This document shows positions 61,551 to 61,704 of a stretch of 64,000 nt of DNA, piece by piece. A program made the position numbers and the translations under genes. The notes under the pieces are model-generated. The model searched no databases. It was not told where the DNA came from and saw only the letters and a program-made list of their open reading frames with translations. The stretch is from the NCBI RefSeq assembly GCF_006345805.1, contig NC_043021.1, forward strand, positions 16,802,001-16,866,000. The letters run 5' to 3'. Source of the DNA: Octopus sinensis (lineage: Eukaryota). The stretch's first letter is position 1. Each line of letters begins with the position of its first letter.

Positions 61551-61704
61551 CAGCGTAGTTATCAAATAATGTAGGTAGATACTCCGTGTGGAAAGTATTA
61601 TTTGTAATTCTGGCTGCTAAACATGACTTGCCAATGGCACTGTCTCCGACCAGAACACACTTTATGTTGCTTTTGTCTAAACTTTCGTCGAGTTCGGACG
61701 TCAT
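61551..61704 (-). CDS. First coding exon of a Rho-family small GTPase (Cdc42/Rac/RhoQ-like switch I, RhoH-like P-loop)
   Basis: ATG at 61704 in CCAAAATG context. 51 codons +1 nt: [51 protein letters not shown]. Contains G1 GxxxxGKS and switch I YxPTxFDNY, and ends at a consensus donor. Confidence 0.92.

Follow-up and report, generated by a model that had tools for sequence, protein, structure and literature searches.

A single coding exon of a Rho GTPase gene lies on the minus strand of a 64,000-nucleotide stretch of Octopus sinensis DNA (NC_043021.1, positions 16,802,001 to 16,866,000; hereafter the window), and it encodes the P-loop of a protein that probably belongs, judging from its sequence and those of its relatives, to an independently evolved atypical Rho subfamily which is mollusc-specific on present evidence. 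The exon is 166 nt long, and its final base (61551, a G) is the first base of the next, split codon. From an in-exon ATG it codes for a 51-amino-acid (aa) peptide (61704 to 61552) in which the position equivalent to Gly12 of Cdc42, whose numbering is used here for all residue positions, is occupied by Ser (codon AGT, 61641-61639), as had been claimed in the initial annotation of this DNA. The site table also agrees with that annotation in that the Phe28 equivalent and a Cdc42-type switch I (Y32, T35, F37, D38 and Y40) are kept, and the phase-1 intron that it had placed after FDNYA is seen both in the window and in every mollusc orthologue examined. When the peptide alone was compared with the PDB, it matched Cdc42, Rac and RhoG chains at E values of about 5e-12, the best being Cdc42 (5e-12), and in tblastn searches with human Cdc42, Rac1, RhoA, RhoH and RhoQ the P-loop exon was the only match in the window. 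No further G-domain exon was found there by tblastn with the human Rho proteins or with the Argonauta and Mercenaria orthologues, because only 61.5 kb of the window lie downstream of the exon and the intron that follows measures about 67 kb in O. vulgaris.

The full-length product was recovered by an exhaustive HMMER search with a three-sequence exon profile, followed by two profile searches; a word-indexed search with the 51-aa peptide gave only two fragments, so the exhaustive search was needed to reach full-length proteins. The O. vulgaris product (CAI9740903.1, 'cdc42 homolog isoform X2', 224 aa) is identical to the window translation over residues 2-56, and the exon itself matches its O. 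vulgaris counterpart at 165 of 166 nt, the single difference being synonymous (Cys, TGT/TGC). The same exon peptide as in the window occurs in the O. bimaculoides protein XP_014771783.1. The Octopus product is 219-224 aa long, and in both O. vulgaris and O. bimaculoides it shows GDSAIGKS (G1), DTPGQ (G3), TQTD and ECSAL, with SCTKCGCQIV at the C-terminus.

The O. vulgaris gene covers about 90 kb of chromosome OX597838.1 and consists of a 5′ exon, a 19,370-nt intron, the 166-nt P-loop exon, a 67,340-nt intron, a 59-nt exon encoding VTVIVQNEPYVLSLFDTPGQ, a 2.3-kb intron and the last exon. The 5′ exon, which ends in AAAATG/GTAAGT and supplies the ATG of the longer isoform, lies about 19 kb upstream of the P-loop exon and outside the equivalent of the window; the sequence upstream of the P-loop exon is identical between the window and O. 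vulgaris, and the O. vulgaris gene model requires splicing from that 5′ exon. Window positions 61089-63389 align to positions 27664-30014 of the O. vulgaris locus (L011). The O. sinensis RefSeq model XP_036355875.1 (P0335, 180 aa, on a 41-kb scaffold) is without the P-loop exon and begins with an unrelated MLNGDDAYDDDN; both features probably arose in annotation from the ~67-kb intron together with a break in the scaffold. Gene models of the clade described below can be truncated in this way owing to the very long intron.

Table 1. Features of the window. Positions count from the first base of the 64,000-nt stretch.
Feature	Position	Strand	Basis or remark
P-loop coding exon	61551..61716	minus	Translation; exon 2 of O. 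vulgaris model CAI9740903.1
In-exon ATG, start of shorter annotated isoform (MTSEL...)	61702..61704	minus	MTSEL is the N-terminus of CAI9740904.1 (O. vulgaris) and XP_014771784.1 (O. bimaculoides)
G1 / P-loop GDSAIGKS	61624..61647	minus	Translation; site table in Cdc42 numbering
Splice donor GTAAGT, phase-1 intron after FDNYA	61545..61550	minus	Read from sequence
Splice acceptor AG (AACCCAG/CCAGCG)	61717..61718	minus	5′ edge of P-loop exon
Long intron after P-loop exon, part	1..61544	minus	Aligns to O. vulgaris intron, 90-96% identity
3′ part of intron between 5′ ATG exon and P-loop exon	61719..64000	minus	O. vulgaris intron alignment
LINE-like 238-aa open reading frame (ORF) containing LERRRERYAVIYIWKILEGLVPNFGIQ	33351-34067	minus	Inside long intron
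Dense low-complexity DNA	24400-27200	both	Spurious ORFs: poly-His/Tyr, poly-Pro, poly-Gly/Asn, poly-Asp and Thr-His repeats
Assembly gap, 100 N	20642-20741		Inside long intron
Microsatellites (CT)n/(TCTA)n and A/C-rich runs	61000-61550		Directly after donor
Microsatellites upstream of exon, with (GA)n	61720-63650
(GATA)n	~62080-62350 and 63480-63560		Upstream of exon
(TG)n	~63380-63450		Upstream of exon
(CATA)n/(GTAC)n	~63570-63640		Upstream of exon

Proteins of about 200-225 residues, annotated as 'cdc42 homolog', 'CDC42-like' or 'hypothetical', form a mollusc clade with the Octopus product. They come from cephalopods (Octopus and Argonauta), from bivalves that include Mercenaria, Ruditapes, Mactra, Mya, Dreissena, Ylistrum, oysters and Mytilus, and from gastropods that include Lottia, Patella, Haliotis, Gigantopelta, Littorina, Nucella and Babylonia. 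With a 21-sequence profile the single-domain members scored 344-257 bits and generic Cdc42/Rac proteins at most 249 bits, every named match above this score gap being from a mollusc. When non-mollusc members were sought with the same profile, only a Lingula protein came up, which has a canonical GDGAVGKT and is TC10-like. A tree of Rho proteins with molluscan sequences, as proposed in the initial annotation, was built by neighbour-joining (the only tree method used) from 68 sequences and 176 columns with 300 bootstraps, its reference sequences being taken from Table S1 of Li et al. 2015 (PMC4669188). The 21 sequences of the mollusc set group together with 99% bootstrap support, and within this clade the cephalopod (100%), gastropod (99%) and bivalve (97%) sequences group separately. 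RhoH (100%), Rnd including bivalve Rnd (95%), RhoBTB (100%), the mollusc TC10-like proteins (78%), RhoU/V and CRP-1 from C. elegans all fall outside it.

A few members depart from the common pattern. In Nucella and Babylonia there are two clade paralogues each, and one Littorina sequence was retrieved (P0292-P0296); all five have THxD as their G4 motif instead of TQxD/NKxD. The orthologue model of Argonauta hians (GAB1608151.1, P0004, 308 aa) has Cys12/Asp13 and DTSGQ; a low-complexity Gly/His/Asn/Gln insertion, in frame and about 80 residues long, sits precisely where the Rho insert belongs, and a poly-Gly stretch lies ahead of the CAAX box. In P0003 (786 aa), a protein that is not a clade member, a hydrophobic, transmembrane-like segment at the N-terminus is combined with three Rho domains in tandem that Pro/Ser-rich repeats keep apart, none of the three having Gly12 (GDTE, GDSK, GDAE).

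The full Octopus protein matches the Pfam Ras family (PF00071) at E=6.7e-40, and the motifs of a Ras-type G domain are all present (GxxxxGK[ST], T35, DTxG, TQxD and SAL). Invariant or conserved throughout the clade are G10, D11, G15, K16, S/T17, F28, Y32, T35, F37, D38, Y40, F56, D57, T58, G60, D118 and S158; the clade is further marked by a helix alpha1 signature GK[ST]-x-LA-x-R and by a conserved DK-S-N/x motif that precedes strand beta1. At position 12 the 21 tabulated sequences carry S, T, A, C, E, M or P but in no case G, and Gly12 occurs in none of the approximately 50 clade members and fragments that were scanned; as far as the alignment goes, the conserved feature at this position is 'anything but Gly', not Ser itself. 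Position 13 takes any of A, G, D, E, M, N, T, C, S and L, and position 59 any of A, S and P; at position 61 there is Q in cephalopods and gastropods, K in most bivalves and R in mytilids. The initial annotation had pointed to the Ala59 and Gln61 equivalents and the CAAX box of the full-length protein, which turn out to be Pro59, Gln61 and CQIV, so that the Octopus catalytic set reads S12/A13/P59/Q61. A CAAX box (C-a-a-[VILMA]) is present in 21 of 21 aligned members with invariant and near-invariant upstream Cys; the C-terminus reads C-x-x-C-x-CQIV in Octopus and C(C)xCaaX in the other members. The Rho-insert position holds additional residues; they are unconserved, Gly/Asn-rich in Octopus, and non-helical with low confidence in the AlphaFold model (AF2; predicted local distance difference test, pLDDT, ~50-77), which otherwise shows a canonical Rho G domain and has a mean pLDDT of 81.5, a core above 90 and a template modelling (TM) score of ~0.88 to Rac1/Cdc42 structures.

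By BLASTP the clade proteins are 51-52% identical to Cdc42, 48-50% to mollusc TC10-like/RhoQ proteins, 38-41% to RhoH and 28-39% to Rnd. To compare intron positions, coding sequences were reconstructed exactly from the genomic loci. In Mactra, Lottia, oyster and Octopus the clade genes carry a phase-1 intron after A41 (FDNYA), then a 59-nt exon, then a phase-0 intron behind residue 61; the Mactra TC10-like gene (P0251) has the same two introns and the same 59-nt exon, whereas in Solemya velum the introns of canonical Cdc42 lie after ~V36, K96 and Q162, with none at A41 or Q61. The suggestion in the initial annotation that the intron after FDNYA is of RHOQ/J/U/V type therefore holds for the mollusc TC10-like (RhoQ/J-type) gene, and canonical Cdc42 is without it. 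In Mactra antiquata, Mya arenaria and Mercenaria mercenaria a TC10-like gene also adjoins the clade gene head-to-head on its upstream side, at 27 kb, 4.6 kb and 9.2 kb respectively, and an enhancer-of-rudimentary gene (PF01133) lies downstream of the clade gene in all three. Since the two introns match and this head-to-head linkage recurs in three bivalves, the clade gene is probably an inverted local duplicate of a TC10-like gene that arose in the molluscan stem and then lost Gly12. The neighbour-joining tree gives no supported sister relation, so that this origin rests on the introns, the linkage and the C-terminus. The micro-synteny of the three bivalve loci (L013, L019 and L020, from Mactra, Mercenaria and Mya) reads TC10-like (-), clade gene (+), enhancer-of-rudimentary (-), and in Mya an extra 191-aa Ras/Arf-like gene lies just past the TC10-like gene (L020, 955-1959).

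From the residues that are kept and those that are lost, it seems quite likely that the Octopus protein is a membrane-anchored, mainly GTP-bound Rho of Cdc42/TC10-like type that is controlled by expression or turnover. The protein would still bind guanine nucleotide and Mg2+, the residues for this being kept (G10, G15, K16, S/T17, F28, T35, D57, G60, TQxD and SAL), and it would present a Cdc42-type effector face made of switch I and strand beta2 (FDNYAVTV). The side chain at position 12 would block the arginine finger of the Rho GTPase-activating proteins (RhoGAPs), which would leave the protein refractory to GAP-stimulated hydrolysis and mainly in the GTP-bound form. Anchoring to the membrane would be provided by the prenylated CAAX box CQIV, the upstream C-x-x-C-x-C being candidates for palmitoylation as in TC10 and RhoB, and expression or turnover would take the place of a cycle of guanine nucleotide exchange factors and GAPs, as for RhoH and Rnd. 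In Ras and Rho proteins the replacement of Gly12 abolishes GAP sensitivity and lowers or abolishes hydrolysis, and RhoH and RhoE/Rnd3, which naturally have Ser12, are GTPase-deficient and constitutively active (PMC2565660; PMC5982818). The substituted catalytic residues place the Octopus protein among the atypical Rho proteins, its putative GTPase deficiency being drawn from the G12 literature only. The fixed nucleotide, Mg and effector residues, together with the drift at positions 12 and 13 and the bivalve Q61K/R, suggest that selection has been for binding and for effectors, not for GAP-assisted catalysis.

Several points weigh against this account of the gene and its product. The deep nodes of the neighbour-joining tree have less than 10% support and the clade is not resolved as sister to the TC10-like group; also, the TC10-like linkage was seen in three heterodont bivalves only, and a search of 10 kb around the gene in Lottia, oyster and Octopus did not show it. 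Expression in Octopus rests on database gene models, the spliced contig described below being from another octopod. With respect to catalysis, Octopus keeps Gln61 and intrinsic hydrolysis may persist. Ser or Ala at the G12 equivalent is normal in Rabs, which are switched off efficiently by their own GAPs, and for this reason a residue other than Gly at position 12 does not by itself make a dead switch. Finally one gastropod, Patella, has Pro12, and Pro12 is the sole substitution known in Ras work not to be transforming.

The last three points bear on an alternative that we consider rather unlikely, namely that the protein is still a regulated switch that cycles between GDP and GTP, if slowly, either because enough intrinsic hydrolysis is left with Ser12 and the retained Gln61 or with the help of a GAP for which space for a classical arginine finger is not required. 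It is consistent with Gln61, Thr35, Asp57 and Gly60 all being kept in cephalopods and gastropods, with the Pro12 of Patella, and with the bivalve P-loops GD[S/T/A]GVGKS, which resemble those of Rabs (HsRab4 has GNAGTGKS, with Ala at the G12 equivalent; Li et al. 2015, PMC4669188); the strong purifying selection on the switch regions would be expected for a working switch too. However, the free variation at positions 12 and 13 over about half a billion years and the bivalve Q61K/R point to a relaxed catalytic constraint, the same combination is found in the GTPase-deficient Rnd and RhoH, and Glu or Met at position 12 is hard to square with a finger-assisted transition state. We would give little weight to a further variant, in which the clade is a rewired switch with a Rab-like P-loop and a dispensable Gln61, hydrolysis being provided in trans by a partner and a bidirectional promoter being shared with the TC10-like neighbour. 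Rab and Rap GAPs do supply catalytic groups in trans, and if this were true the clade would be the first Rho-family member handed to a non-RhoGAP off-switch.

A mainly GTP-bound protein of TC10-like descent is the reading we favour, and it is very improbable that the clade is instead orthologous to vertebrate RhoH or to Rnd, or an old relative of theirs that has survived, which would make these families older than thought. The P-loop is nearly identical to that of RhoH up to (I/V)GK and TQTD is common to both, but RhoH is a 100% clade of its own that never joins the mollusc clade, and BLASTP gives 129-133 bits to RhoH versus 177-180 to Cdc42. The hallmarks of RhoH (N61, W56, the YENTG switch I and the CKIF tail) are absent, Octopus having Q61, F56 and FDNYA; molluscs own a separate Rnd orthologue (PyRnd, CgRnd) that groups with chordate Rnd at 95%; and the introns and the chromosomal neighbour point to a TC10-like gene. 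The likeness to RhoH and Rnd is, on these comparisons, probably convergent. Of the two possibilities raised in the initial annotation, convergence with RhoH or an unrecognised older lineage, the former is thereby supported by the low identity and the separate clade, and an age greater than that of molluscs is not supported on present evidence. Three other candidate relationships were rejected: orthology to CRP-1 (Thr12) has no tree support and 35% identity; a link to RhoBTB suggested by 'LICARA' versus 'LAARI' comes with 31-33% identity, no grouping and no BTB domains; and the clade is neither the 'Tc10' nor the 'Rnd' of the bivalves in Li et al. 2015, since that Tc10 has GDGAIGKT and that Rnd is a true Rnd.

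The same Ser codon is present in independent assemblies of two or three Octopus species, the O. bimaculoides peptide being identical, and in a distant octopod (Logan contigs L001-L009) this Ser is encoded by AGC; position 12 is Thr in a relative that is more distant still. Compared with Octopus, the exon of the distant octopod differs by 27 synonymous versus 5 non-synonymous codon changes, and over 200 aligned codons of the distant octopod and O. vulgaris the proportion of non-synonymous differences (pN) is 0.12 and pN/pS about 0.14, a ratio given because pS is saturated (0.87) and a Jukes-Cantor dS is not computable. A 2.1-kb Logan contig from the distant octopod (L012) holds an uninterrupted 201-aa ORF, and is taken as a spliced mRNA because it matches the genomic contig L001 across the exon only, with AG and GT at the flanks. 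A lone exon amid microsatellites and low-complexity DNA could be taken for a misassembled exon of canonical Cdc42, or for a pseudogene exon that is not expressed and lies in a repeat-rich region, but both are refuted by this recurrence of the Ser codon, by the bias of the codon changes, by the spliced contig, by remaining exons 67 kb off with GT-AG borders and an intact 224-aa ORF, and by orthologues across three mollusc classes, so neither of the failings that the initial annotation had foreseen applies.

The part of the long intron that lies in the window is rich in microsatellites and low-complexity sequence (Table 1). The tblastn matches at 24.4-27 kb (His/Gly/Gln, for example to the low-complexity insert of Argonauta) are repeats and not exons. 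The 238-aa ORF in the intron resembles the C-terminal region of the ORF2 proteins of non-LTR (long interspersed nuclear element, LINE) retrotransposons; a Pfam search of it gave no match at E<=0.01. No tRNA was found in the window with ARAGORN.

In reviews the Rho proteins are divided into nine subfamilies, RhoH is regarded as vertebrate-specific, and Rnd has been traced to cnidarians in one analysis (PMC7600811; PMC4669188). The census of bivalve Rho genes by Li et al. 2015 (PMC4669188) lists twelve in oyster, among which the oyster clade member P0205 is not found, and no sequence with the clade signature ('LAAR') was found in Table S1 of that study. No description of the mollusc clade was found in the searchable literature, and the clade appears to be undescribed so far. 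Invertebrate Cdc42-like or Rho proteins without Gly12 are already known, namely CHW-1 (Ala), CRP-1 (Thr) and bivalve Rnd. The initial annotation was therefore right that a real invertebrate Rho without Gly12 is encoded here, but the bare observation is less surprising than it had supposed, given the precedents of bivalve Rnd (GDSE/GDCG), CHW-1, CRP-1 and RhoBTB. In haemocytes of C. gigas a 'Cdc42-like (Cdc42l)' gene is reported to be granulocyte-enriched and Fos/AP-1-regulated (PMC7269103). This Cdc42l may be the oyster clade member P0205, for which the UniRef name is 'Cdc42-like protein'.

GTPase-deficient Rho proteins (Rnd, RhoH, RhoBTB) are treated in surveys as a few old or vertebrate-only oddities, and the mollusc clade, if our interpretation is true, would add another, independent instance of a Rho switch that has lost its off-mechanism. 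In this case the parent gene (TC10-like) would be identifiable and the age of the clade bounded to the molluscan stem, and a relaxed constraint would be exposed, with positions 12 and 13 drifting while the nucleotide-binding residues stay fixed. The three natural variants (S12/P59/Q61 in octopus, X12/A59/Q61 in gastropods and X12/A59/K61 in bivalves) offer a test of the weight of each catalytic residue in a Cdc42 scaffold. The protein is also a candidate for a built-in antagonist or a permanent activator of Cdc42/TC10 effector pathways in molluscs, and the 'cdc42 homolog' label is a mislabelling of the clade genes in every genome.

Among known Rho proteins, the mollusc TC10-like protein ('Tc10' of Li et al. 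2015; P0251 in Mactra) shares with the clade Phe56, TQxD, a switch I/beta2 of Cdc42 type, a short extension at the N-terminus and a CAAX tail rich in cysteines; upstream cysteines next to a CAAX box are likewise found in RhoQ (CINCCLIT) and RhoB (CINCCKVL). It differs in having the canonical GDGAVGKT, DTAGQ, CMLVSY in alpha1 and a normal Rho insert, whereas the clade has no Gly12, LA(A/R/K)R in alpha1, RLR[VT]xSYM[NK]CD in switch II and a degenerate insert that is predicted to be non-helical. Cdc42 is the best match by BLASTP and in the PDB and is similar in F56, TQxD, the effector strand FDNYAVTV and the fold (TM ~0.88), but has Gly12, Ala59, other intron positions, a polybasic CAAX tail and extreme sequence conservation.

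RhoH resembles the clade in Ser at 12 (Cys in fish), Ala at 13, a CAAX box and, by analogy, a predicted GAP-resistant, GTP-bound behaviour; it departs from it in N/H61, W56, the switch I TVYENTG, a motif like the immunoreceptor tyrosine-based activation motif and its restriction to vertebrates, and is 38-41% identical. Rnd, including bivalve Rnd, also has a residue other than Gly at 12 (S/V/T/C), and its Ser59 (DTSG) is found in some clade members; it too is an atypical, presumably constitutively GTP-bound Rho and occurs in molluscs. However, Rnd differs in S61, CKxD and W56, in a switch I that is like that of RhoA (FENY), and in the long extension and farnesyl CAAM at its C-terminus, and the clade has TQxD, a short tail and CQIV. 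Finally, CRP-1 (Thr12) and CHW-1 (Ala12) of C. elegans are, like the clade, invertebrate paralogues of the Cdc42 subfamily without Gly12, and for CRP-1 a TC10/TCL-like character, an atypical enzymology and a CCTIL tail have been described; but at 35-38% identity, without the LAAR helix and separate in the tree, both belong to independent nematode lineages.

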